Shown: positions 11,150 through 51,333 of the stretch, in pieces
How the letters are laid out: each line of letters opens with the position of its first letter
How positions within the stretch are numbered: position 1 is the stretch's first letter
The notes under the pieces: model-generated
The model's database searches: none
The model's input: only the letters and a program-made list of their open reading frames with translations
Told to the model about the DNA's origin: nothing
Position numbers and translations under genes: made by a program
From: Hyaloraphidium curvatum SAG 235-1
Lineage: Eukaryota > Fungi > Monoblepharomycota
NCBI GenBank assembly: GCA_025558095.1
Contig: JAIVFI010000015.1
Coordinates: forward strand, 558,001 to 622,000
Length of the DNA stretch: 64,000 nucleotides
Reading direction: 5' to 3'

Positions 11150-11708
11150 TTCAAGAAGCGGGCCGGATGTGTGGGATGGACACGGACGCACCTCCCCTCT
11201 GATCGTTCGATCGGCCGCCCCCAGAAGAGGCCGCTGGGCGATAGCCGGGGAAAAAGCGACAAAGCATCTCCAGATGGATGGATTGCATGGCCACAACCCC
11301 GCACAGGACAAGAGACAGCGCGCGGCGAACCACGAGTTGGTAACAAGCTCCCTGTACTTCTCGTAAAAGGCCCGTTACATCCCCCCGTTTGCGCCCCTAT
11401 GCGCGCGTGCCTGATAAAGCGGTGGTGTCATACTTGATGGCAGAGATTAGCTGGGGTGGGAGGCAGGTGTGAGCGTCCGATAAATGGAAACCAGAGCGTC
11501 GCGGGCAAGGCTGCGGCAGCAAGGATGATCCGGGCCAGCCGAATAGCATCCGCGGCGATGGCACAATGCAATCTCCGCAGAAGGCTCCAGCGGATGGAGG
11601 CCGGGCTGCGGATGCGGCCGCGAAATGCCTGTCACGGCCCGTCCGACCCCCACCGCCCCATCCGGCCCATTCCGCCACGCCAGCGACCCATCCACGGCCG
11701 CACGATAC

Positions 11709-12332
11709 TCACAATCCGAGCTCCTTCTTCGTCGGCACGCCGAGCTCCTCCAGCATCGGCTTCAGGGCCGAGACGTACTGCTCGTACTGGCCCTTGTTCT
11801 CGGCGCGCTCCTCGATGCCCTCGAGGATGCGCACGGCGGTGGGGAACGAGTTGAGGCGGCGGGTGGCCTTGAGCGCCTCCTCGACGACGCCGAGCGCCGG
11901 CACCCAGTCGTGCACGAAGCACTCGTTCAGCCCGACCTCGAGGTCGGTCTCGTCGTCGACCTCGCGGAAGAAGGCCAGCCACTGGTCGACGAAGGCGTCG
12001 TAGTTCTTCTCGGGGTCGAGCGCCGCCGAGGCGTAGGCGCGCACGGCGGGCGCGGGGCGCGCGGCGGGCTGCAGCATGCTGGGCGCGACTGGGCGGGGCG
12101 CGAGTCAGCACGGTGTCCGCGAATCCCCTCCGGGCACCGCATAGACGCCTCCCGCCGGGCCTTAAATCGCCCTTAGGCCGCGCGGCCCGGGCGGATTCCC
12201 GCAGCAGCCGGGCGCGGCGCGGCAGCCCGGTGGCGCCCGGCGCCCGCCACGCAATCCCCGACGCTCACCGCGCGCCACGTGCAGCGCACGCAGGTTGATG
12301 GTCGGCGCAACGCGGAACGCGAACCGCTGCAT
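11709..12332 (-). CDS. COX5A: Cytochrome c oxidase subunit Va (yeast Cox6), mitochondrial
   Basis: Exon 1 (12332-12269) encodes a presequence, intron 12089-12268, exon 2 contains LEVGLNECFVHDWVPALGVVEEALKATRRLNSFPTAVRILEGI..LKPMLEELGVPTKKELG. Confidence 0.93.
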
Positions 12333-12558
12333 CTCGGCGGCTGGTCGGAGGGCGAGGGATGGACCGCGAGAAGAGATGGAGGAGCCTGACGTTCCCTGAC
12401 TAATCGGCCAACTACCCGAAACTCCTAAGCACCCCCCCAACGCCTCAAAAGAAAAACATCGTCGGGTCCGAACGCGATCCGCAGCCAGTCCGTCTATCGG
12501 TGTTCCTTCTAGCAGTTCTAAGTGCGCCACCGGTGTTTTCCCGCCCTCAATCCGGCGG

Positions 12559-14153
12559 CTACTGCTCCCCGATCGCGCCCGAATGCCGCTCCTCGGACGC
12601 CGCCCTGTCGTCCTCCCCCTTGACCGTCCCCGCGGCCTCGGCATGCCCGTTGGCATGCGCCGGCAGCAGCTGCGTCCTTTCCGTCCCCTCTGCCGCCTCC
12701 GCGGCCGCCCGCACCATCCCCAGCACCCTCTCCATCCCCGCCTCGAGCGCCTCCGCCTCCTTCCTCACCGCATCGATCTGGTCCTCCACGCGCGTCCGCA
12801 CCTCGCCGTCCCCCGTGAGCGAAAGCAGCCCCAGGAACCCGCCCTTTTCCCGCTCCGAGGCACGCAGCGCCGCCAGCCTCGCCGCCGAGAGCGCGAACGC
12901 CCCCTCGAGCCTCGCCACCGCCGCTCTGTGCTCCGCCAGCAGCCTCTCGTGCGCCGCCGCGTTCGTGCCCGCCGGCAAAGCGGGCGAATACGGCGACGCG
13001 GCCGCCGACCCGTCCGACCCCGCCCGCCGCCTTTTGCGGGACCCCGCCTCGCTCCCCTCGCTCGACTCCTCCGCCGCCGGCCTCGAAAACATCAGCCCCG
13101 TGAGCGCCTCCACCGCGTCCCGGTCCGCGGCGCTCGGCAGCACCCTCGAGTGCGCCCGCGGGACCGTGTTCTGGTACCCCGCGGGATCGGCGAGCCTATT
13201 GTCCGTGTCCGAGTCGCTGTCCGAGTCGCCGGCGCCGCCCCACGACGGTTGCTGCGGCGGCGGGCGGGAGAAGAGGTCCTCGGGGGCGGCGGCGGGGGCG
13301 CGGGTGGAGCGGGACGGGCGGAGGCGGGCCTCGTACGTGTTGACGACGGGAACCTCGCCGATCCGGACGCGGGGGAGGGTAATGCTCGTGGTGTCGCCTC
13401 CTGCAACGATGGATCGTCAGGTGCCGCTGATCGCGCCTCGGCGCCAACACTCACTCCGCCCGCCGTGGTTCCGCTTGCCGGGCTGATCGATTTCCCACAT
13501 GTCCTTGAACAGAGAAAGAACGAGCGGATGGTTGAGTCCCATCTTCCTGGGTCCGCTGAGGGAGAAAGTGCCTCCGCCCTGTCATGCGTGAGCTGCGCAC
13601 GCCACACGCCGCACAACGGACCCACCAGCCGCTGCCCGCTCGCCACCGCCGCCTTGAACATCGTCGTGGCCGTCGACGCTACAAACACCCTGCCGTCGGG
13701 CCTGTCCAGCGGCCGCAGCTCGTACTTGCCGCTGGGCAGGATGCACGCCGAGTACCAGATCAGGCTGGCCTGGTCCAGGTAGTCGTGGAACCTGACGATG
13801 CACCGGTAGTTGTTGGGGTACTGCGACAGCGTGTTTGTGTACCGGCCCAGCTGCAGGATCCGCACGCCGCCCGCCGAGCCGGTCTTGACGAAGAGCGGCG
13901 TTTGGAGAGTCCGCGCGTTTTCGTCGGAGAAATCAAGGTCCGCGAGCGACGTGTCCTGGGTCAGCTGCACCACCTCGTCGTTGCCATCGAGGGAAAACTC
14001 CCCGCCGCCGTCTGCGGGGTATTCGTGGCCGAACTCGTCGTCGGAGTCCTGCGCCGCGGCCGAGGCGGACATCTCCGCCGCCAGGGATTCCCTGAACGGA
14101 GAGGCCCGCGGGGTCGGGAGCGTCGAAGACGGCTGAGAGCCGTCGGAATTCAT
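12559..14153 (-). CDS. FYR (FYRN/FYRC-like) domain nuclear protein, spliced
   Basis: VRILQLG..YPNNYRCIVRFHDYLD..WYSACI...YELRPLDRPDGRVFVASTAT resembles FYRN-FYRC. An NLS-like RKRRR and a coiled coil lie in the last exon. Confidence 0.6.
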
Positions 14154-37106: not shown

Positions 37107-38552
37107 TCACGCCGCCACCGCAAGCGCTGCCATTGCAACCAGTGTCCCCATCCATCCGGAAGCCCCCGAGGCTCCGACCCGCACCGCGCCCGACTCGGGC
37201 CTCGCATCCGTCGGCGGGGGGGGCTCCCCCGGGCACGACTCCACACGTCCCGTCGCGAAGACCAGTTCCGCCCTATCACACCACGCGGCCCTCTGGGTGC
37301 CATTGGTCCGCTCCGGGCACAGAAAGCCGGCGACGACGCGATTGTTTACCAGGGCCGCCGGCGCGGGCTCGCTGGGGGCCAGCTCTGTGCATTCACCGTC
37401 GACGAACCACGAGCATGCCGGGCCCGAGAAAAACGCCAGATCCGGGACGAAGGTACCGTTCCGCGGGCCGGCGCAGGCGACCCGCGGGCCGCGCCCGCCG
37501 TCCGCCGGGGTCAGCTCGGCGGCGAGGAAGTAGTGCCCCTGGTCATCGGGGTGGTAGGAGCGCAGGCACCGCGTGGTGCCTGCCTCCGGTGGGCATCCGG
37601 GCTGCTCGCAGAGGGGTTCGGGCGGGAGGGTGTCGTTGAGCGCCAGGGCGAGCGCGGCGGGGCACCACGGGAAGGTCGATGCCATGCCGTTGCAGGCGAC
37701 GTTGTTCGGAAAGCCTTTCACAGCGAGGCTGTAGTCGGGGCCGGGGAAGAGATGCGTGCATCCTTGGTCGCAAAAGTAGGCGCAGGAAAGCTCGGTTCGG
37801 AGCGGAAGCCCGTTCGGATTCGAGGGGAAGCCCGTTGCGCACTGGCCGTCCGTTTGGTTCCCGAAGCCGATGCGGCGAACCGATATGTACAGCCCCGGTA
37901 AAGGGCCGTCGCAGGTGCGCATGCATGTCCAGTCGCCGGTCCAGGGCGTGTTGTTGGCGACCAGGTGGGACAGGTCGGAGCAGCTGGCCGATTCCGGGAC
38001 CGGCGTGCCGAACAGCGACGAGTGCGCCTCGACGCACCACGGCACAAACGAGGTGATGTTGGTGATGTTCTTCTCCCCGTCCGGCCCAATGCATTCGGTC
38101 GGCCCGGCCGACTGCGGTGCCGGGCCGATGGCGTCGAGGCACCACGGGTCCGAGAAGAGCGTGCAAGTGCCGTTCCCCCGGCAGGCAACCGACGCGCTGC
38201 CGTACCACCCCGCCGCGCGTGCGTCCTCGACAGCGACGAACGCGCAGCCCAGGGACGGGATGCGCACGCAGCTGCCGCGCCGCTCGCACTCGGCCGGCCC
38301 CGGCGCGAAATCCCGACCGCGCACCCGCCGGCCGACGCCGACCACCCGGTCGCCGCCCTCGCACGCGCCGACGCAGCGCACCCGCGACCCGCCGTAGCCG
38401 CTGTCAGACCAGCGGCCGTAGACGCAGTTGATGAGGCCCGTGGCGGGGTCGAGCCATTCCTGCTGGTTGAGGCCGCTGTGCGAGGCCCGGGAGGCGGGCA
38501 CAAGGACGAGGAGGGCGACTGCAGAGAGGTAGCAGACAGTGAGTGTTCGCAT
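37107..38552 (-). CDS. Secreted Cys-rich protein with possible GPI-anchor signal
   Basis: Signal peptide MRTLTVCYLSAVALLVLVPASRA, many Cys, and a small-residue omega region followed by hydrophobic C-terminus ASGASGWMGTLVAMAALAVAA. Confidence 0.7.
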   Translation of the reverse strand: MRTLTVCYLSAVALLVLVPASRASHSGLNQQEWLDPATGLINCVYGRWSDSGYGGSRVRCVGACEGGDRVVGVGRRVRGRDFAPGPAECERRGSCVRIPSLGCAFVAVEDARAAGWYGSASVACRGNGTCTLFSDPWCLDAIGPAPQSAGPTECIGPDGEKNITNITSFVPWCVEAHSSLFGTPVPESASCSDLSHLVANNTPWTGDWTCMRTCDGPLPGLYISVRRIGFGNQTDGQCATGFPSNPNGLPLRTELSCAYFCDQGCTHLFPGPDYSLAVKGFPNNVACNGMASTFPWCPAALALALNDTLPPEPLCEQPGCPPEAGTTRCLRSYHPDDQGHYFLAAELTPADGGRGPRVACAGPRNGTFVPDLAFFSGPACSWFVDGECTELAPSEPAPAALVNNRVVAGFLCPERTNGTQRAAWCDRAELVFATGRVESCPGEPPPPTDARPESGAVRVGASGASGWMGTLVAMAALAVAA

Positions 38553-38750
38553 AGGTGTGTTTGGTTCAGTTTTGTCGTGTGACTCAGTGAGGGGCGGAGC
38601 AGCGGCAAGTTCGGGAAGGCGGGGGGGGGTTTCTCATTCAATCCGCGGATCCGGGAGACAGTCGCTTGGACACGGACCCAACCAGAATCAATCGTGCATC
38701 TGCCCGGCATCCGCCGAGGCTCGTCTCGGGCCCCCCTCGGTTCTGGGGCT

Positions 38751-38845
38751 TGCATGGCCCTCGCCGCCCGCGCAGCCGTGGTGACCCGCTGCGGCGAGTG
38801 CGACGCCAACGCGCACTGCGAGTACAGCGTGGTGTTCGGCGAGCA
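38751..38845 (+). repeat. About 95-bp orphan copy of the 5' coding region of the gene at 43148
   Basis: Near-identical to 43181-43275 (CGECDANAHCEYSVVFGE); similarity ends abruptly. Confidence 0.85.
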
Positions 38846-39029
38846 AGAAGAGTTGCTGCCGCTGCAACTTTGTTCCAGAACCTCCACAAAGATCAACTTC
38901 CGCAGGGCAACCATGGAGCCCTACAATGCAAACCCTCCCTTCCCGCATGCGTGCTCTTGGCTTGAACAACAGAAACTCCATCACGAAGATCTGGAAACAA
39001 AGTCCTCGAAACAAAACCTGGGACCCGGG

Positions 39030-39497
39030 TACTCTTTTGCCTGGCCACCTGCCCCAGAGACAGCGGACGCCTTTGCCCCGGTGGTCTCGTCCTCGATGCA
39101 GTGGACGAACGCGTCCACCACGCCTTCCATGGGTGTCCAGACCTCCAGACGATTTGAACATGCTTGCAAAAGTCGGATTCTCTGAAATGGCGTCGGGGTC
39201 GTCACCGAACGTCTTGAACTGGCGATCGATGGCGTTGGCTCCAAACGAAGGCATCATGTTCGAGCAGCCCAACGTACCCAGGACTCCAAACAAAGCCCGG
39301 TAGTACAGCAGAATATCGGATTGGATACGGCTCCTTGCCGGCGTTCTTTGCATCCCACTCGAGGCAGGATTGGGTGTTGACCACGAACTGGCCACGATCC
39401 GCGAGGTCAGGCGATCCCCGAAGTGAAGCACCGCACTCGAAGAGACCGTGCTTCCGCCCGTAACCAGAGCGGCTTTGCCGCGGATTTCGAAAACCAT
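39030..39497 (-). pseudogene. Short-chain dehydrogenase/reductase remnant
   Basis: MVFEIRGKAALVTGGST (Rossmann start) and the C-terminal-like TPMEGVVDAFVHCIEDETTGA fall in different frames. The catalytic middle region is not recognisable. Confidence 0.55.
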
Positions 39498-39612
39498 TGC
39501 CGTTACTTGTTGCCCGCGGTGCAGGCCGTCTCGGAATGTTCGCACGATCGACGCGATCGCGTCAGCCATCCTCCTCGCGGTCCCCGCAACAGCGCTGTTT
39601 GTCTTCCAGGCG

Positions 39613-41085
39613 ATGGCAGTGCTATTCACGGACCGCGAGTGGCTCGCCCTGTTCCCGGCCCAACCTCCGCCGGACCCGTCTCTCTTCCGCGGGCCACTTC
39701 CCGACCCGGCAAGGGAGCTCCGCGCCGCGGACGCGCTTTCCTTCGACGCGCTCGTCTCCAATCTGCCGGACGCGCTCCTGCGAGCGCAGGTGATCGCCGC
39801 GCGCCGCCTGGAGCCGCTGGCCGCCCGTTTCATTGTGCGCTACTCGGCGCTCGGCGCACTGACAATGGCGCTCTACGGCGCCGCAGTGGCCTTCAACGAC
39901 GGGCGGTACGGAGGGCCGCAGGTCGCCACGGGCTTCGCGACCATCGCCGCGCCTTTCGCCTTCCTCATTGGGACCATCGCGGCTACCCGCTTCCGCGAAG
40001 GCAGCTGGGCCCGCATCTACCGCCCCGTCGGCGAGCTCAAGAAGGGCGAGGTTCCGGCTCCCGCGGAAGACTTTAGCGCCCACCCTTTCGCGGGCATTGC
40101 CCGCTGGACCCAGCTGGTCTCCTTGCCGCCCAAGGCGGACGCCAAGGACGAGGAGAACGGCGGCGCGTCCGCGCCGACGGACAAGCTGACGGCGCACGAC
40201 CCGGACGACCCGGATTGCCCCTGCGGCCTTGCCACATGCCTCGGAGACGCGCCGAGATCGGCCGGCAGGCAGCGCGTGGTCCAGGTCGTCGTCCAGCTTG
40301 TGGAAGAGCTGGTGCAATTCGTTTTGACCGTGTGGACGCCGCTCGTGGTGCTCGGGGCGTCCGTGTGGACCTCGCCGTGGTCTGCACCGATCGCGGCGCT
40401 GTACTGCTGCGTGCTCGTGGTGCACGCCCCCGCGACCACCTTAGGAACGACGCAGACCAATTTGCCGGCGCTCGCGGTTGCCAGGAGGCTCCACCACCGG
40501 GCCGTGAAGATCGCCCTGGAGGACCTGCTTTCTCGGTGCGCGACTGGTTCCGAGGTGCCGGATCCGTCCACGGAAGAGCGCTACGTCCAGCTCCACTGGA
40601 CGTTGTGCGCGACTTACACGAACCATCTGCACTTCCTCTCGAACGGCCAGGGGTTGATTGTCACCGCGCTCCCGCTTCTCGCAGTGTGCGGGATCGTCAA
40701 CGCCGCCGTAGGCCGCTGCGTCCCGGCCTGGATAGCCCTCATCTTCTGCTACTTCGCAGTCTGGTTCGCCGTGCCCACGGCCATGGTCGCCGTCTGGAAC
40801 CGCAACATCGTCTCGGTCGCGGAGCTGTACCGCAACGCGCAGGAGAGGCTGGTGCTCCTCGAGCCCGAGTCGGCATCTCCCGCGGCGCTGGAGCGCCACG
40901 GGAGGCTGTTGGGCCTGCTGAGGGAGGGCATCGCCGCGCGCAGGGGAACGTTCATGGGGTTGACGGTCGGGCTGGGGACCGTGAGGACGTACCTGGCCAC
41001 GCTCTTCACGGTGCTGCTGGGCCTGTGGACGCTGCTGCGGGGGGCCGGGATCGCGATCACGGTCGACTCGGTCTGCCCGGGATAG
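39613..41085 (+). CDS. 7-TM family member (copy C), gustatory-receptor-like/7TM ion channel candidate
   Basis: FTDREWLALFP, HPFAGIARW, HDPDDPDCPCGLATCLG, RYVQLHWTL, GRCVP, GTFMGLTVGLGTVRTYLATLFT..GLWTLLRGAG..DSVCPG. Confidence 0.8.
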   Translation: MAVLFTDREWLALFPAQPPPDPSLFRGPLPDPARELRAADALSFDALVSNLPDALLRAQVIAARRLEPLAARFIVRYSALGALTMALYGAAVAFNDGRYGGPQVATGFATIAAPFAFLIGTIAATRFREGSWARIYRPVGELKKGEVPAPAEDFSAHPFAGIARWTQLVSLPPKADAKDEENGGASAPTDKLTAHDPDDPDCPCGLATCLGDAPRSAGRQRVVQVVVQLVEELVQFVLTVWTPLVVLGASVWTSPWSAPIAALYCCVLVVHAPATTLGTTQTNLPALAVARRLHHRAVKIALEDLLSRCATGSEVPDPSTEERYVQLHWTLCATYTNHLHFLSNGQGLIVTALPLLAVCGIVNAAVGRCVPAWIALIFCYFAVWFAVPTAMVAVWNRNIVSVAELYRNAQERLVLLEPESASPAALERHGRLLGLLREGIAARRGTFMGLTVGLGTVRTYLATLFTVLLGLWTLLRGAGIAITVDSVCPG

Positions 41086-44127: not shown

Positions 44128-47100
44128 TCACGGCGCACAATATACCCTCAGATCGTCCAGGAAGTTCATGTCCTTGACGACGATGTCCACCCCGTCGAAC
44201 GCCGGCGCGATCGCCGCCTCGGCGTCCGCGCCGCTGCCCTCCAGCTCGTCCGGCCCGTCCGCACCCAGGAACAGCCGCGACCTCCCCGCCTCGTAGTCGA
44301 TCTCCAGCACCGCGTCCCTGGTGCTCGTTATCGGCTTGCCCGAGCCCCACTCGCCCTCCAGGTTGGCACCCAGGATGGCCCACTCGCTCCCGTACGCGGC
44401 CCCCACGCCCCCGGCCACCGCCCCGCCGTCCTTCAGCCGGACGTTGGGCGCGCCGTCCCCCACCGCCCCAAAATTGGCCCTGAACGCCAGGTACCCGCGC
44501 CTGCACGAGTTTGCGTCCACCCGCGACGCCAGGGGGCGGAGGCACCCGCGCAGCGCCGCGCCCCCGGAGCCGCCGGTGCTCCCGACCGCGCGCTCGTTCC
44601 TGACGGCGAGGGAGGGGAACCACGTCGCGCTGCGCGACCAGGCGGCGGACCAGCCGCTGCCCCCCGAACGGCCGGCGAGGTCGCCGTTGGGATACGAAAA
44701 GGATTCGGAGGCCCTTTGGGTGGGGACGGGGCGCGCGGTCGTCGTGGTTGTCGTTGTCGTTGTTGTAGTCGTAGTTGTCTGTCGTTTTCCGGTGCCGTTG
44801 AGCGATGGGAACGGCAAGGTTCGGTGGGGGAAGGGTAAAGAGCAAAGGGGGCCGACCGTCAGCTTCCCCGTCAGCAAAATTCCCGCGAATCCACGCACCG
44901 TGGTGGTAGTGGTAGTCGTTGTAGTGGTCTGCGATTCGGCGGCGAGGGTTTCGAAGGGAGGGCAGGGGACGGCAATGTGCCCCGGGCGTGGGGGAACAAG
45001 GTCAGCTGCCGCGCGCCCGCAAAACTCCCCCGCAACGCACCGTGGTCGTCGTTGTTGTCGTCTCTGATGTCGTCGTAGTCGTTTCCGAGGTCGTGGTCTG
45101 CATGCGGAGCGGGCCACGGGCGGGGGGGGGGGGATGCGGGGACCCGGGGATGCGAAGGGGCATCGTCAGCATCCTGCGGCATCCTGCGCGCGAGGACATC
45201 CAGATCCAAAACGCACCGTGGTCGTCGTCGTCGTTTCGGAGGTCGTCGTGGTGGGTTCGGTGGTTGTTGTCTGCGGTTGGACGGGGTGCGGCGGGGTGGG
45301 ACGCGGGGACGGGGGAGAGGCCGAATCAGCCCCGGCGCACGGGATGATCGCGGCATGCAAAACGCACCGTGGTCGTCGTGGTGGCCTCGGACGTCGTCGT
45401 TGTAGTCGGCTCGGACGTCGTGGTCTGCATTTCGGATCGGGTGGCGAGGGCCCGCAAGGAAAGGCACCGTCAGGTCTCGCCCGCCGCGAAAACGCCCCAG
45501 CAAACGCACCGTCGTCGTCGTTGGCGGCGGGTCCGTGGTCGCGGGGGTGGTCTCGAAGGTCGTCGTCTGCGGTGCGGAACAGTGGGCGACGGTGCGGGGA
45601 TGCGAGGCGCAACGTCAACCTCCCGCGCGCAAATATCGCAACATGCAAACGCACCGTGGTCGTCTCCGAGCTCGTCGTCGTGGTTTCCGAGCTCGTCGTG
45701 GTGGTTTCGGGCGGCGCGGGCGTCGTCTCGACCGGCGGCGAGGTGGTCGGAGGCGGGGGCGGCGGATCGGTCGTCGACGGGGGCGCCTCGGTGGTCGGAG
45801 AGGGCACGTCCGAGGTCGTGGGGAGCGGAGGAGGTGCTTCCGTTGTTGTCGGAGGCGGGGGAGGCGGTTCGGTGGTTGTTGGAGGGGGAGGAGGGGGTTC
45901 GGTGGTGGGGGGGGGCGGCGGAGGCGCCTCGCTGGTGGTCGGAGGCGCCTCAGTGGTGGGAGAGGGCGCATCCGAGGTTGTTGGAGGCGGAGGCGGCGCT
46001 TCCGTAGTCACCGGTGGCACTTCCGTGGTTCTGGGAAGAGCATCGGTGGTCGTTGGCGGCTGAGGCGGGGCCGCCGTCGTGACAGGCGCATCGGTGGTCG
46101 GCAGCGGGGGTGGGGCCTCTGTTGTCACAGGAGGCGTCTCGGTGGTAGTGAATGCGTCCGTCGTCGACGCTGGCGGGGGAGGCGCATCGGTGGTCGGCAG
46201 CGGCGGCTCCGTGCTGATCGGCGGCGGGGGTGCTTCCGTCGTCGACGCGGGCGGAGGGGCCGCCTCAGTCGCGGTCAGAGGCGCGTCGGTCGACGAAGGA
46301 AGCACCGCGCTGGTCGACGCGGGCGGCGGCACGTCGCTGGTCGACAGCGGTGCTGCGCTGGTCGTCGCCGGCGCCACCGTGCTCTTGACGGACGCTTTGG
46401 TCGTCGCGGGTGCCGCCGTGCTCTTGACGGGCGCCTTCGTCGTCACCACGGGCGGGGGCGGCGCCTTGGTCGTCACGATGGGCGGCGGCGGCACCGCCGT
46501 CGGCCCCGGCGGCGCAACCGAAGTCGCGGGCGGCGGCAACGGCGGCACTTCCGTTTCCGGCGCCGGCGGGATCGGAGCTTCCGAGGTGGGTACGGGGCCA
46601 GGAGCCTCCTCCGTCGGCGCGAAGGTCGGTTCCGGGGCGGGGGCAAGCGGCGCCGCGGTCGTCGGCGCGGGGACGAGACCGGTGCTTCCAGCTTGAGGCG
46701 GTACGTCCGGGGTTGTCGCATCCAGTGCCGCCGTGGGGGTCACCGCGATCGGCGGCGCGGCGGATGTCGCCGGCAGAGCACCCGTGCTCGGCTCGGGAGC
46801 CGCGGTGCCCGTAGCCGGCGGCGCGGTCCCCAGCACCGACAGGACAGGCGTCGGCCTCGGCACGATGGGCAGGGTAACCGTCCGCTCCGCGTCCGATCCC
46901 GCGTCCTCCGTCTCCAGTGCGGCCACGGTGATGGTGCCCGTTCCGAGCGGCGTGTTGGGGACGCTGTCGTTGGGATCGGGTGCCGGTGCGGGTGTCCCCG
47001 TTGGGGAGGCCGCCGACGAGGGTTGCGGCGCGGGTTGGGGAGAGGCCGAGGGCACCGCTGCCGGGGCGGAGGTCCCCAAGAGCTGGGGCTGAGAGGCCGA

Positions 47101-47586
47101 GGGCACTGCCGGGGCACCCGTGGCCGATAGTGCCTGCGATGGCCGATTCGCCGGCGGCGAGGCCGTCCCGACTGTCTGGCTCGCCGCCTGCCCCGTGGTC
47201 CCCGTTTCAGCCTCCACGGTGCCGCTCGGCTGCAGCAGGGGCACCAGCGGCACGGGCGGGGGCGGCGCCGGCGGGGGCAGCTCGCGAGCGGCCTCAAAAT
47301 ACTCGTTCGCGTGCAGCAGCGGCGGCGCCTCGTGTTTGAACATCATCCGCTCCTCGTCGCGGACGATCTGCGCGAGCGACGGCGATCCCGGCAGGTGCCC
47401 GCGCATGGCGCTCTCTGCGGCGGCGCCGGCCTTTTTCTGGTGCGTGTGCGCGAAGTTCACGCGGGCCATGGCCGCCATCATGAACCGGCGCTCCATGGGG
47501 CGCCGCGGCACCGCGACGCCGCCGGCCACCCCGGCCAATGCAGCCAGCGCAGCCAGCAGCCACGCCAACGCCACCGCGGCCCGCAT
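44128..47586 (-). CDS. Secreted mucin-like Pro/Thr-rich protein with globular C-terminal domain, 7 exons
   Basis: Signal peptide at 47586 and a long exon to 45655. Mini-exons 45566-45510, 45424-45368, 45270-45217, 45097-45041, 44928-44899. Last exon 44778-44128 (ESFSYPNGDLAGRSGGSGWSAAW...FLDDLRV). Confidence 0.85.
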
Positions 47587-47695
47587 CTCGGCGTCGGGCT
47601 GCGGGCGGCCTCGTCGGGAGAACAGCGGCCAAGCCCCTCAAGGGATTGGATCGGCCGACAGTTGCACCGCCAATCAGGTCCACCCATCGCTCGCG

Positions 47696-48964
47696 ATGCC
47701 GGCGTCTGTGGGCCGCCGGCCACCGCGGGGGCGCCTCCTCGCCGCGATCGCCGTCTTGGCGGGGCTGCTGGCCGCCGCCGCCGCGCCCGCCGATGCCTTT
47801 GTTTCGACCGGCGGAGTGGTCCCTCGACTGGACGACCCGCCCGAGAACTCGACCGTCGTGCTCGTCGGCATATTCGTGCGCAAGGTGTACGACTTCGATC
47901 CGACCACGGACACGTACCAGGTCACCTTCGACCTGTGGCTGACCTGGCCGGACGCCGGCCCCAACGGCACCGACCCCTCGCAGTCGGTCTCGATCTCCAA
48001 CGCCGTCGACCTCGGCTCCGCCGTGCTCAGCCGCGCATTCGACGCCCCCCGCGCAGCCAACGGCACCCTGACCGCGCTCTTCCGCGCGCAGGCCCGCCTG
48101 GCCCGGGTCTTCGACATGCGGCCCTTCCCCGCCGACCGCCACACGCTCGACATCGTCATCGAGGACGAGTCGGACCCGACAAACTACTACCTCCCCGACG
48201 AGGCCCGCTCCGGCTTCGGCGCCGGCTTCTCGATCCCCGGCTGGCTCGCCGGGCCCATGCGCGCCGTGCCCGCGCTGCACGACTACGCCACGGACTTCGG
48301 CACCTTCCCAAACGGCACCCTGTTCCCCGCCGCGGTCTTCAGCATCCCCATCTCCCGCGGAAACTTCCTCCTCGCGTGGCAGCTCGTCCCCCTCATCTTC
48401 GTCCTGTGCCTCTCGTGGCTCAGCCTGCTGATCAACCCCGCCCGCGCCGACTCGCGGATCGCCCTCGCCACCACCGCCCTCCTCACCGCCGTCTTTTTGC
48501 AACAGGCTGCGCTGTCTCTCTTCAACCGCACCTACCTCGTACTCCTCGACCAGCTGTACGCCATGGCCTACGCCTTCTTCGCCGCAAATCTCATTATGGT
48601 CCTCTTGGACGAGCTGCAGTACTCCGAATTCTTCGAGAACCCGATCCGCAACGAACCCCGCGCGCAGCGCGACCTCGAGGACGCGGCGGAGGGTGCCGAC
48701 AAGCCCGACGGCGAATCCGTCCTCCTCGTGCCCAACCCCGCTCCCCCCGAACTGCCCGCCGGCGAATCCCCCCGCGAGCCGTGGTTCGCCCCCCTCTCGC
48801 GCGGGCGCAGGGGGTGCAGGCAGTGCCTGGGCCCGTGGTTCCTCCCGCGCACGGCGGAGGGCGCCGCGGCGGCGATCAAGACGAGGGACCTGGCGCTGCT
48901 GGCGGCGGAGCTCGTGGCGTTCCCGGTGGCGACGGGGATCCTGTGCGGCACGGCGATGAACTAG
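47696..48964 (+). CDS. Pentameric ligand-gated ion channel, Cys-less (GLIC/ELIC-like Pro-loop type), intronless
   Basis: Signal peptide, VLVGIFVRKVYDFD..TYQVTFDLWLTW, Pro-loop FDMRPFPADRHTLDIVIE, IPGW, M1 LVPLIFVLCLSWLSLLI, M2 DSRIALATTALLTAVFLQ, M3 YLVLLDQLYAMAY, M4 at the C-terminus. Confidence 0.88.
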   Translation: MPASVGRRPPRGRLLAAIAVLAGLLAAAAAPADAFVSTGGVVPRLDDPPENSTVVLVGIFVRKVYDFDPTTDTYQVTFDLWLTWPDAGPNGTDPSQSVSISNAVDLGSAVLSRAFDAPRAANGTLTALFRAQARLARVFDMRPFPADRHTLDIVIEDESDPTNYYLPDEARSGFGAGFSIPGWLAGPMRAVPALHDYATDFGTFPNGTLFPAAVFSIPISRGNFLLAWQLVPLIFVLCLSWLSLLINPARADSRIALATTALLTAVFLQQAALSLFNRTYLVLLDQLYAMAYAFFAANLIMVLLDELQYSEFFENPIRNEPRAQRDLEDAAEGADKPDGESVLLVPNPAPPELPAGESPREPWFAPLSRGRRGCRQCLGPWFLPRTAEGAAAAIKTRDLALLAAELVAFPVATGILCGTAMN

Positions 48965-49419: not shown

Positions 49420-51333
49420 ATGGCTGACGCTGCCGGAGACGCGCCCGCTCCGCGCGACCGACGCAAGCGGAGCGCCGCTGCGCTGCCCGACGCCGGGGCC
49501 AAGCGCCGGCGCCACCCGGGGCACGTGCTCAGCTCGGCGCGCGCCGTCGCCCTCGCGAGCTCCGTCGTGGAAGCCGTGCGGCGCGCGGTCGGGGCGCCAC
49601 GCGAGACAGACAACCCGCACACGCCCGAGGCCGCGTACCGCCGCGCGATGGACCACAAGGACGGCACGGGCCTGCGGGAAGAGGACCCGGCCGAAGCCGC
49701 GCGGTGGTTCGCGAGAGCTGCGCAGGGCGGCCACGTCGGGGCCGCGGTGGAGCTCGCGTGGATGTGCTGGGAGGGCGAGGGGATGGACGGCAAGGACTTG
49801 GATGCGTATGCGCGGCTGGCCGCGTTTGCGGCCGAGAAGGGCCACGTCGACGCGATGGTGATGCTCGCGGGCGCGTACAAGTTTGGCGACGGCGTCGAAG
49901 AGGACTCGGATCAGGCCTACTACTGGTTCCGGCGCGCGGCGGGGGAGGGCGACGTGCCGGCCATGACCGAAGCCGCACGCATCCTGCTCGAGAGCCCTAC
50001 CCGCTCCTCCGACGACGTCGAAGAAGCGTTGCAGCTGCTCCGAGGCGCAGCGGACCCGCAAGAGGCCAATGACACAGACGCGCAGCTCATGCTAGGGGAA
50101 CTGCACTTCAAGGGCGAGCTGGTGCCGCGGAACCTGGTCGAAGCCAGGAGCTGGCTGGAACTCGCGGCGGTCAAGCGCGGCGTCGACCATGGGCTGCTCC
50201 CCGAAGACGAAAAGGAGGAATACTACCAGGCCGAGCACATGGCGATGAACGAGGCGGCGCCGCTCCTGGAGCAAGTAAAGGAAATGCTGAAGGAGGAGTT
50301 GTGGCAGGCGCAGGAGGCTTTGGCGAGGATGAGGATCGTCTACTCGGATCTAGTCTTCGACGAAGGACCGCCTTTTGCCCGGGGTGGGTTCGGAGAAGTG
50401 CATCGGGCCGTTCTCAAGGGGGCGACCGCGGTGGCGGTCAAGAGAATCACAAGGAACGACTTGCGGGCTAGGGGGATCTTCAAGGACGAAGTTACCGCGT
50501 GGATCTCGCTTGTGCACTCAAACAGTGAGCACCTCATCGGCTCCGAGGTCCCCGGCTGACCCGCCTTCTCCGCCGCAGTCAACCCGCTCATGGCCTTCTG
50601 TGACAGTCCCCTCCTCATGGTATCGGAACTGTGCCCCGACGGCAACATGCAGACGTATCTGTCCAAGCAAAACTGGGCTCCCGCGCTCGGCGCCTCCCTC
50701 CTCGCCGGCGTCGCCCAAGGCATGGCCCACCTGCACTCCCACGACATCATCCACGGCGACCTCAAATGCGCCAACGTGCTCGTCGGCCGCGGCGGAACCG
50801 CGCGGATCTCGGATTTCGGACTGGCGAAGCTGCGGCGCACCGTTGCGGCCGGGACCGGGAACGGTGCGGGCCCGGGCGGGACGCCCGCGTTCATGGCGCC
50901 GGAGCTGCTCTCGGGAGGCGAGCCGGAGAAGCCTTCGGATGTGTACGCGTACGCCATGCTGTGCTACGAGGTCGTCACCAAGGGGATGATGCCGTTCTTT
51001 GGGCACCGCATGCCGGGGCTCGATAGCATCTTGGCTAAAATGGCTTTGGCGATGGACAAGGAAAAGGTGCTCCGAGGCGAGAGGCCCAAGGATCACCTTG
51101 ATGCGGCCGAGGAGGGACTGCTGGTGGAGATCATGGACAAGTGCTGGCAGCAGGATCCAAGGGAAAGGCCGCGGTTCGTGGATGTCGCGAAGATAATGGA
51201 GGACGTGGCCGTTGAGGCCCGACTGATGGCAGATGGTGCAACGGCGTCATTTTCGGAGCTAAGCAGGTCGTATTCAGGAGCAGGCGGCGAAGACGGGGGA
51301 TCGATGGCGCCAGCCAATAATGTAACCAAATAG
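49420..51333 (+). CDS. Sel1-like repeats + TKL-type protein kinase
   Basis: Sel1 repeats (EAARWFARAAQGGH, QAYYWFRRAAGEGD, EARSWLELAA). Kinase motifs GGFGEV, VAVK, HGDLKCANVL, DFG, GTPAFMAPE, SDVYAY. Intron near 50525-50577. Confidence 0.92.

Follow-up and report, generated by a model that had tools for sequence, protein, structure and literature searches.

Does a fungus carry an ion channel of the pentameric ligand-gated kind (pLGIC), and, if so, where did it come from? The question is raised by a gene in a 64,000-nucleotide stretch of the genome of Hyaloraphidium curvatum SAG 235-1, a planktonic member of the Fungi (Monoblepharomycota, Hyaloraphidiomycetes). This stretch, here called the window, spans C15:558001-622000 (contig JAIVFI010000015.1) of a 31.9-Mb assembly in 55 contigs (GCA_025558095.1), which we designate by C numbers. 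An earlier annotation made from the letters alone (the sequence-only reading) had proposed that positions 47696-48964 encode a Cys-less pLGIC in a fungus-like genome, acquired horizontally or retained from ancient times, and had set this against the absence of such channels from Dikarya. The host is indeed a true fungus; it lies in Monoblepharomycota and not in Dikarya, and the published negative is broader than the one invoked, since Jaiteh, Taly and Henin (2016; PMC4795631) found pLGICs in many protists but none in Fungi, a distribution that a 2024 survey still cites. Our full-text literature searches returned no paper linking pLGIC or Cys-loop receptors with chytrid-grade or related fungal groups. 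Here we report that the locus is an intact pLGIC subunit gene resident in a fungal nuclear genome, and that it probably entered the fungal lineage from bacteria.

Results

An intact gene for a Cys-less channel subunit

Positions 47696-48964 of the forward strand form a single open reading frame (ORF) of 422 codons that begins with an ATG at 47696 and ends with a stop codon at 48962-48964. The same frame stays open upstream as far as a GTG at 47120; this extension overlaps the divergent neighbour at its 5' end. The paralogues described below have their start codons at the position of the ATG at 47696. The GC content at third codon positions (GC3) of this frame is 0.93, compared with 0.84 for an exon of the neighbouring kinase gene and an overall GC content of 0.66 for the window, and the encoded protein keeps all 24 invariant columns of a 24-sequence family alignment, so the ORF is not a product of chance. 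The gene and the parts of its product are as follows, with the evidence for each in brackets.

47696..48964, plus strand: complete coding sequence, in one exon, of a Cys-less (Pro-loop) pLGIC subunit of 422 residues (ORF, phmmer, AlphaFold 2 (AF2), Foldseek, GC3)
47696..47797, plus strand: putative signal peptide, residues 1-34 (sequence pattern, alignment with the N termini of a paralogue and relatives)
47798..48361, plus strand: extracellular beta-sandwich domain, residues 35-222 (the AF2 model shows ten strands, with predicted local distance difference test (pLDDT) values mostly >93)
48104..48136, plus strand: Pro-loop, the equivalent of the Cys-loop without its cysteines, residues 137-147, including F-P-A-D (column conservation, alignment with GLIC)
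48365..48430, plus strand: M1 helix, residues 224-245 (AF2 helix)
48446..48514, plus strand: M2 pore-lining helix, residues 251-273 (AF2 helix)
48542..48634, plus strand: M3 helix, residues 283-313 (AF2 helix)
48635..48853, plus strand: long M3-M4 intracellular loop, residues 314-386 (73 residues), mostly disordered (AF2 pLDDT 55-74)
48854..48958, plus strand: pre-M4 extension and M4 helix, residues 387-421 (AF2 helix, pLDDT 81-96)

The layout that the sequence-only reading had described, an intron-free Cys-less pLGIC with an M3-M4 loop of some 70-80 residues that far exceeds those of GLIC and ELIC, is borne out by this uninterrupted frame, by the modelled helices and by the 73-residue loop of the model. 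The putative signal peptide comprises a basic n-region, an Ala/Leu h-region and an A-D-A motif ahead of F35, and resembles the N terminus of P0001, a hypothetical protein of H. curvatum in NCBI. The ectodomain contains four N-x-S/T sequons (N51, N90, N122 and N206) and conserves the family residues W81, W84, P94, N102, E156, Y165, W183, Y197 and G202. In the strict Cys-loop receptors of animals (nAChR, 5-HT3, GABA-A and GlyR), two cysteines 13 residues apart flank the beta6-beta7 loop. The only cysteines of the window protein are residues 238, 374, 377 and 417; its ectodomain has none and thus no Cys-loop, which places the protein outside the strict class. Residues 143-147 instead read P-F-P-A-D, of which F-P-A-D (144-147) aligns with the Y-P-F-D loop of GLIC; P145 is kept in 135 of 135 relatives and D147 in 124 of them. 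The same relatives conserve Arg221 ahead of M1 (125 of 135) and D285 in M3 (131 of 135), and the M4 segment aligns with that of every relative, including the near-invariant Asp398.

To relate the protein to solved structures, we searched all PDB sequences with phmmer and obtained matches to GLIC, the proton-gated cation channel of Gloeobacter violaceus (PDB 3EAM and others), and to GLIC chimeras, with E values from 4.9e-10 to 1e-5 over residues 52-305 (~250 residues). The structural model was computed by AlphaFold from a 135-sequence alignment, a single-sequence run having given a pLDDT of only 39. The alignment-based model (pLDDT 87.2, predicted template modelling score 0.78) contains ten strands, four helices and a low-confidence loop at residues 314-386. 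With this model as query, Foldseek ranked GLIC first among PDB entries (E 5e-18, template modelling score 0.70 by target), followed by glycine receptors and GluCl; at least 500 PDB chains matched at E <= 0.001, and all among the matches listed are pLGICs. A two-copy complex prediction for residues 35-422 scored 0.01, which carries no weight either way.

The protein thus presents the features of the superfamily: the fold, the Pro and Asp of the Pro-loop, the Arg before M1, a basic residue at the 0' position of M2, a hydrophobic residue at 9' and similarity to GLIC. Together, sequence and model support its assignment as a subunit of a prokaryotic-type, Cys-less (Pro-loop, GLIC-like) pLGIC. GLIC is its best match among solved proteins in both sequence and structure; the two share a Cys-less Pro-loop and an architecture of ten strands plus four helices, and are alike in an acidic -2' residue, a hydrophobic 9' gate, the Pro-loop Asp and the pre-M1 Arg. 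However, they are only ~20-22% identical, loop C of the window protein is six residues longer, its 13' residue is Phe, and its 73-residue M3-M4 loop contrasts with the very short one of GLIC. Unlike GLIC, moreover, the window protein has a eukaryotic host, a putative signal peptide and N-glycosylation sequons.

The closest relatives are bacterial

An exhaustive phmmer search of 1.84 billion representatives with the window protein gave 1302 matches, 295 of them at E <1e-10 and 23 at E <1e-30. Among the best 150 of the 1302, all those that could be named are bacterial or from H. curvatum itself; no other named eukaryote occurs among them. Named bacterial matches include a Deltaproteobacteria metagenome-assembled genome (MAG), Chlorobium, Planktothrix and Synechococcus, and a six-sequence bacterial alignment used as query located 32 loci in GTDB, distributed over Actinomycetota, Chloroflexota, Chlorobiota, Bacteroidota, Bacillota, Thermodesulfobacteriota, Pseudomonadota, Cyanobacteriota and Spirochaetota.

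The family to which the window protein truly belongs by sequence is an uncharacterised bacterial pLGIC subfamily of 340-400 residues (27-37% identity, E to 1e-43), whose hosts include freshwater Actinomycetota, Chloroflexota, Chlorobiaceae, Desulfamplus and Planktothrix, among others. The motifs V-x-V-G, W-x-x-W, D-P, F/Y-P-L-D, P-G-W and H-x-Y-x-T-x-F-G are common to this subfamily and the window protein, as is T-A-L-L-T-x-V-F-L-Q-Q in M2. The contigs that carry the actinobacterial relatives also hold ordinary bacterial genes, such as T2SS-F and HipA, from which we conclude that the contigs on the donor side are truly bacterial. The gene neighbourhoods in bacteria, which include a CDF cation efflux protein, a CLC protein, an AMP-binding enzyme, a transglutaminase and an FtsK-like protein, gave no consistent hint of a ligand. 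An ion-transport gene does follow the bacterial pLGIC gene at three loci, encoding a CDF protein in Chlorobium or Chlorobiaceae MAGs and a CLC protein in an alphaproteobacterial MAG (L020:4154-5149, L022:4174-5109 and L037:4065-5387); this context varies across phyla.

Ranking after the H. curvatum paralogues are four eukaryote-like relatives from metagenomic and SRA data (P0002, P0003, P0007 and P0008), which are 48-57% identical to the window protein and have long M3-M4 loops. Their contigs are eukaryotic: genes lie in pieces, and for the housekeeping genes the identity with H. curvatum is 55-76%.

Placement within bacterial diversity favours transfer

The assembly contains six loci of the window family, on C15 (the window gene), C12, C27, C16, C13 and C31. 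We placed their products among the relatives with two trees, in which P0001 (C12) and P0009 (C31) are represented by public models and C13 and C16 by single open-frame pieces. The first, a FastTree analysis of 173 rows, was rooted on a second pLGIC family of the same genome, whose rows are ORF pieces cut shortly after a V-N-Y motif. The six H. curvatum copies and the four eukaryote-like sequences fell within a 46-row, otherwise bacterial clade (support 99). For the second we used IQ-TREE with the LG+C20+F+G4 posterior mean site frequency model on 71 rows and 363 columns, leaving out the 102 more distant rows of the 173. Here the ten eukaryotic rows lie in a 20-row clade (ultrafast bootstrap (UFboot) 93, Shimodaira-Hasegawa-like approximate likelihood ratio (SH-aLRT) 99) whose other members are exclusively Actinomycetota MAG sequences from rivers and lakes. 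Enclosing it are, first, a 36-row clade (96/89) and, further out, a 42-row clade that comprises short-loop sequences and bacteria of seven phyla, including Chloroflexota, Chlorobiota, Bacteroidota and Bacillota. The best tree unites the ten eukaryotic rows in a single clade, at a node with UFboot 45 and SH-aLRT 91.5, within which the window protein, the C12 paralogue and the metagenomic relatives (the window subfamily) group with C16 and C13 at 86/79. The paralogues that have diverged least share 46-50% identity with actinobacterial proteins.

Because the fungal rows are nested inside bacterial diversity, we favour transfer from bacteria to the fungus over ancient retention, and so, of the two origins that the sequence-only reading had left side by side, the horizontal one. 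Specifically, we consider it likely that a GLIC-like pLGIC gene passed once from a freshwater bacterium into the fungal nuclear genome and then expanded to six loci. In this scenario a single entry into the fungal lineage would have left its nearest living relatives in freshwater Actinomycetota, and the transferred gene would afterwards have spread to six loci, taken on host codon usage and, in some copies, acquired introns.

Several observations weigh against this account in whole or in part. The node that stands for a single transfer is the weakly supported one just given, and the window subfamily, at the end of a long branch (1.96), deviates in composition from the rest of the alignment. 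Attraction between GC-rich fungal and actinobacterial sequences could therefore bias its placement; countering this, the eukaryotic contig L012, which carries an orthologue, has a GC content of 54%, and some actinobacterial loci lie at 53-55%. Eukaryotic sampling in the trees is limited to H. curvatum and the four eukaryote-like sequences, although Cys-less pLGICs also occur in diatoms, haptophytes and Capsaspora; a feature-based atlas search lists diatom and haptophyte clusters among the look-alikes. As for the assignment itself, a search with the Pfam models Neur_chan_LBD and Neur_chan_memb, the check that the sequence-only reading had proposed, came out negative: the window protein has no match to PF02931 (Neur_chan_LBD), and its match to PF02932 (Neur_chan_memb; E 0.93, 10.1 bits against a cut-off of 28.1) stays below the gathering score. 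The bacterial relatives likewise fall below the Pfam cut-offs, and the structure search gave GLIC instead; the shortfall lies with the models and not with the fold. Lastly, the selectivity and ligand considered below are read from an alignment.

The poorly supported node leaves some room for two or more transfers from related freshwater bacteria, one giving rise to the short-loop copies (C27, C31 and C16/C13) and another to the long-loop window subfamily. Relations inside the 20-row clade are not resolved, and FastTree does split the window subfamily from the other four copies. However, the sister that FastTree gives to the window subfamily consists of two very long branches, one of them a Synechococcus sequence, so that the join is probably an artefact; the best IQ-TREE tree instead recovers one clade, with the window subfamily and C16/C13 together, and every copy has an M3-M4 loop longer than those of its bacterial relatives. 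We therefore regard more than one transfer as improbable.

A single transfer must also be weighed against vertical descent from a pLGIC of early eukaryotes or opisthokonts that nearly all other fungi lost, its likeness to bacterial proteins reflecting slow evolution. Such retention would fit the patchy occurrence of Cys-less pLGICs in protists (the opisthokonts Capsaspora and Monosiga among them) and the frequent losses documented for such channels (PMC4795631), as well as the diatom and haptophyte look-alikes and the presence of a eukaryote-type pLGIC family in the same genome. Indeed, the window gene resembles the protist channels in being eukaryotic, patchy in distribution and devoid of a Cys-loop, and in having a loop longer than bacterial ones (PMC4795631); it differs from them in that its nearest relatives, in the searches and in trees whose eukaryotic rows come from H. 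curvatum and the eukaryote-like metagenomic sequences, are bacterial. Against retention, the fungal sequences lie several nodes deep in bacterial clades, beside Actinomycetota, to whose proteins the least derived copies show the identity noted above, whereas with the eukaryote-type family of the same genome the alignment of the window protein is confined to the membrane part (28% over 96 residues). Those of the best 150 matches that could be named include no other named eukaryote, and the loop appears to have grown stepwise from a bacterial length. On balance, retention seems to us quite improbable.

A probably maintained gene in the fungal genome

If a bacterial gene did enter this genome, is it still in use? 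Comparison of coding sequences by the Nei-Gojobori (NG86) method gave ratios of nonsynonymous to synonymous substitution (dN/dS) of 0.46 against the C12 paralogue and ~0.2 against P0002 and P0007, figures to be read with caution, because dS is either saturated or, owing to the GC3 bias, compressed. In another genome, an orthologue flanked by the same head-to-head neighbour is kept at 57% identity. The C13 paralogue (C13:117390-118262, minus strand; L005) has one TAG inside its match to the window protein, which is either part of an intron or a disabling stop. That TAG, and the abundance of long spurious ORFs in this region of 70% GC, are what could be expected if the transferred gene were an unused, unexpressed relic whose frame stays open only through the scarcity of stop codons in GC-rich DNA. 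The frame-specific GC3, the retention of all family-invariant residues, the dN/dS values below 0.5 against the paralogue and of 0.2 against the orthologue-like P0002, and the conserved orthologue with its neighbour all argue to the contrary, making decay very unlikely.

The surroundings of the gene are those of a eukaryotic chromosome. It lies >600 kb inside its contig, its GC content matches that of the host, and composition is continuous across the region. Downstream is a gene with Sel1 repeats and a kinase domain that contains an intron of ~54 nt at ~50525-50578 (plus strand), with GT..AG ends, a CTGAC branch site and an in-frame TGA; the intron-containing eukaryotic flanks noted in the sequence-only reading are thus present. 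Upstream, in divergent orientation, are the following.

45166..47586, minus strand: first long exon of a secreted Pro/Thr-rich mucin-like gene, head-to-head with the channel gene; context only (ORF)
47587..47695, no strand: divergent intergenic spacer of 109 bp between the start codons of the channel and mucin-like genes (ORF table)

The N-terminal region of the mucin-like protein, including M-M-F-K-H, aligns with the product of the gene upstream of the L012 orthologue (BLASTP E 2e-5), and a secreted repeat protein is also encoded head-to-head with the channel gene on both of the eukaryotic contigs L012 and L052. Among the paralogues, P0010 (C27) has no introns, whereas P0009 (C31) and P0001 have them; P0001 is 100% identical to the C12 locus and is encoded by two exons, whose 52-nt intron, within M3, has GT..AG ends and a CTGAC branch site. 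From the GC3 of 0.93, the intron-bearing paralogue and flanks and the head-to-head neighbour conserved on two other eukaryotic contigs, we conclude that the channel gene is resident in the fungal nuclear genome. That a contaminating or misjoined piece of bacterial DNA entered the fungal assembly here, as the bacterial affinity of the closest characterised relatives and the lack of an intron might suggest, is scarcely credible for a gene so deep in its contig, between intron-bearing genes with eukaryotic domains, that matches the host in GC and GC3, encodes a 73-residue intracellular loop that the checked bacterial relatives do not have, has a paralogue with a canonical intron and recurs with its neighbour on two independent eukaryotic contigs.

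The arrangement with a short divergent spacer is itself kept in three eukaryotic genomes (window 47587-47695, L012:8196-8422 and L052:7201-7378), the neighbour being a secreted repeat or Big-domain gene. Such conservation may point to a bidirectional promoter common to both genes or to a functional connection between them.

Graded lengths of the intracellular loop

Measured between fixed anchors, the M3-M4 span has a median of 20 residues in the bacterial relatives, compared with 93 in the window protein. With the same anchors the loop is 54 residues long in C27, 75 in C31, 138 in C12 and 133-175 in the metagenomic relatives. Across 134 full-length matches, loops of >45 residues occur only in the fungal and eukaryote-like sequences and in P0095 (48 residues). 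These lengths suggest that, following transfer, the loop lengthened stepwise, from ~20 residues in bacteria through 54-75 in the least derived fungal copies to 93-175 in the window subfamily. Inside the otherwise fast-evolving loop (48635-48853), a P-[WY]-F-[PA] motif with a His or Arg ahead of it stands out; the core P-[WY]-F, which reads P-W-F in the window protein, is common to P0001, P0002, P0003 and P0007.

The intracellular domain is the least understood part of the animal receptors, and the graded loops of the paralogues and their bacterial relatives (20, 54, 75, 93 and 138 residues) provide a tractable case for its origin. We lean, with some reserve, towards the broader proposal that pLGICs of two origins meet in one early-diverging fungal lineage and that a bacterial capture became there a receptor of eukaryotic style, its loop grown step by step, its pocket changed and its copies multiplied. 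If this is true, the paralogues form a natural series for how the intracellular domain of a pLGIC can arise from a bacterial scaffold.

Predicted pore, pocket and coupling

We set the register of M2 by alignment with a GLIC-GlyR chimera, in which R254 matches the 0' Arg of the GlyR pore. The pore positions are then D252 (-2'), S253 (-1'), R254 (0'), A256 (2'), T260 (6'), L263 (9') and F267 (13'). Of the 135 relatives, 119 have Asp or Glu at -2' and 129 have Arg at 0'; a Leu, Phe or Ile occupies 9' in 131 (Leu in 97). The sequence-only reading had stated that the start of M2, A-D-S-R-I-A-L, has neither P-A-R nor a Glu at -1'. Both statements hold, but the acidic D252 at -2' had been overlooked, and with it a means of reading selectivity. 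In GLIC, a ring of Glu at -2' of M2 forms the cation filter; by analogy, the ring of Asp252 at the same position predicts a cation-selective pore.

Residues that couple the two domains throughout the superfamily are present, namely P145 and D147 of the Pro-loop and R221 before M1. The bacterial family shares the candidate pocket residues around loop C (W183, H195, Y197 and F201) and Y165. The complementary face of the pocket has diverged, in contrast: Tyr79 and Tyr126, kept by the bacterial subfamily, are replaced in the window subfamily by Asp and by Thr, Ala or Ser, respectively. In the M2-M3 linker, position 276 is Phe in the window subfamily and Pro in 119 of 127 bacterial relatives, so that the window protein lacks the linker Pro of its bacterial relatives. 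These replacements suggest that the ligand and the gating of the window subfamily probably differ from those of its bacterial ancestors. D72 aligns with E35 of GLIC in the beta1-beta2 loop; that column is mostly Asn in the family and supports no conclusion on proton gating.

These features permit a working model. If the gene is expressed, the signal peptide would route its product into the secretory pathway, and five subunits would assemble into a plasma-membrane channel. The ectodomain would respond to a stimulus from outside the cell, whether protons or a small molecule lodged between subunits beneath loop C; the Pro-loop, the pre-M1 Arg and the M2-M3 linker would relay the change to M2, and the gate at Leu 9' would open. 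The Asp ring at -2' would then confer cation selectivity in the manner of the Glu ring of GLIC.

A second pLGIC family in the same genome

The window gene and its paralogues are not the only pLGIC genes of H. curvatum. A search of the assembly with Pfam models revealed a second family, of eukaryote type, with at least nine loci (four on C6, two each on C1 and C37 and one on C39) and an additional membrane-domain match on C4. The loci, often in tandem or divergent pairs, include the following (L045-L050; Pfam).

C6:45168-47961: second-family locus
C6:861776-864055: second-family locus
C1:280041-282360: second-family locus
C37:166117-168935: second-family locus
C39:459632-460393: second-family locus
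C4:70162-70371: membrane-domain match of the second family

The proteins of this family (P0221-P0229), which pass both Neur_chan_LBD and Neur_chan_memb, have been named automatically in NCBI as 'neurotransmitter-gated ion-channel ligand-binding domain-containing protein', and our literature searches found no paper that discusses them. Their nearest solved relatives are glycine and GABA-A receptors (E ~1e-28). They too are Cys-less, with an F-P-F-D Pro-loop and no C-x13-C, and their genes have introns in M3. Only M1-M3 can be aligned with the window protein. These findings indicate that H. curvatum holds two pLGIC families of different origin.

What is new at the window locus is a gene of a known superfamily in an unexpected kingdom, with a bacterial affinity that is well supported: the window gene and its five paralogues amount to a bacterial-type channel living in a fungal genome. 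Two considerations temper the surprise. The patchy, transfer-prone distribution of the pLGIC superfamily is well known, and the other pLGIC family of the genome is already annotated automatically in NCBI. The window family, by comparison, is invisible to Pfam models and its relatives are labelled 'hypothetical protein', so that domain-based surveys would miss it. The window family adds candidate chemosensory channels for a little-studied planktonic fungus.

Other candidate receptor genes

The sequence-only reading had placed the channel gene alongside a Gr-like family of nearby seven-transmembrane ORFs (39613-41082, plus strand; 37110-39833, minus strand). That identity found no backing in Pfam, where neither ORF has a match at E up to 1. 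A neighbouring receptor gene of another kind does occur beside one of the eukaryote-like relatives: on L051, from the Logan assembly of SRR26194948, P0008 adjoins a gene (11405-13450, minus strand) whose product of 681 residues contains the ionotropic glutamate receptor domain Lig_chan of Pfam, so that two types of ligand-gated channel are neighbours in an uncultured eukaryote related to H. curvatum.

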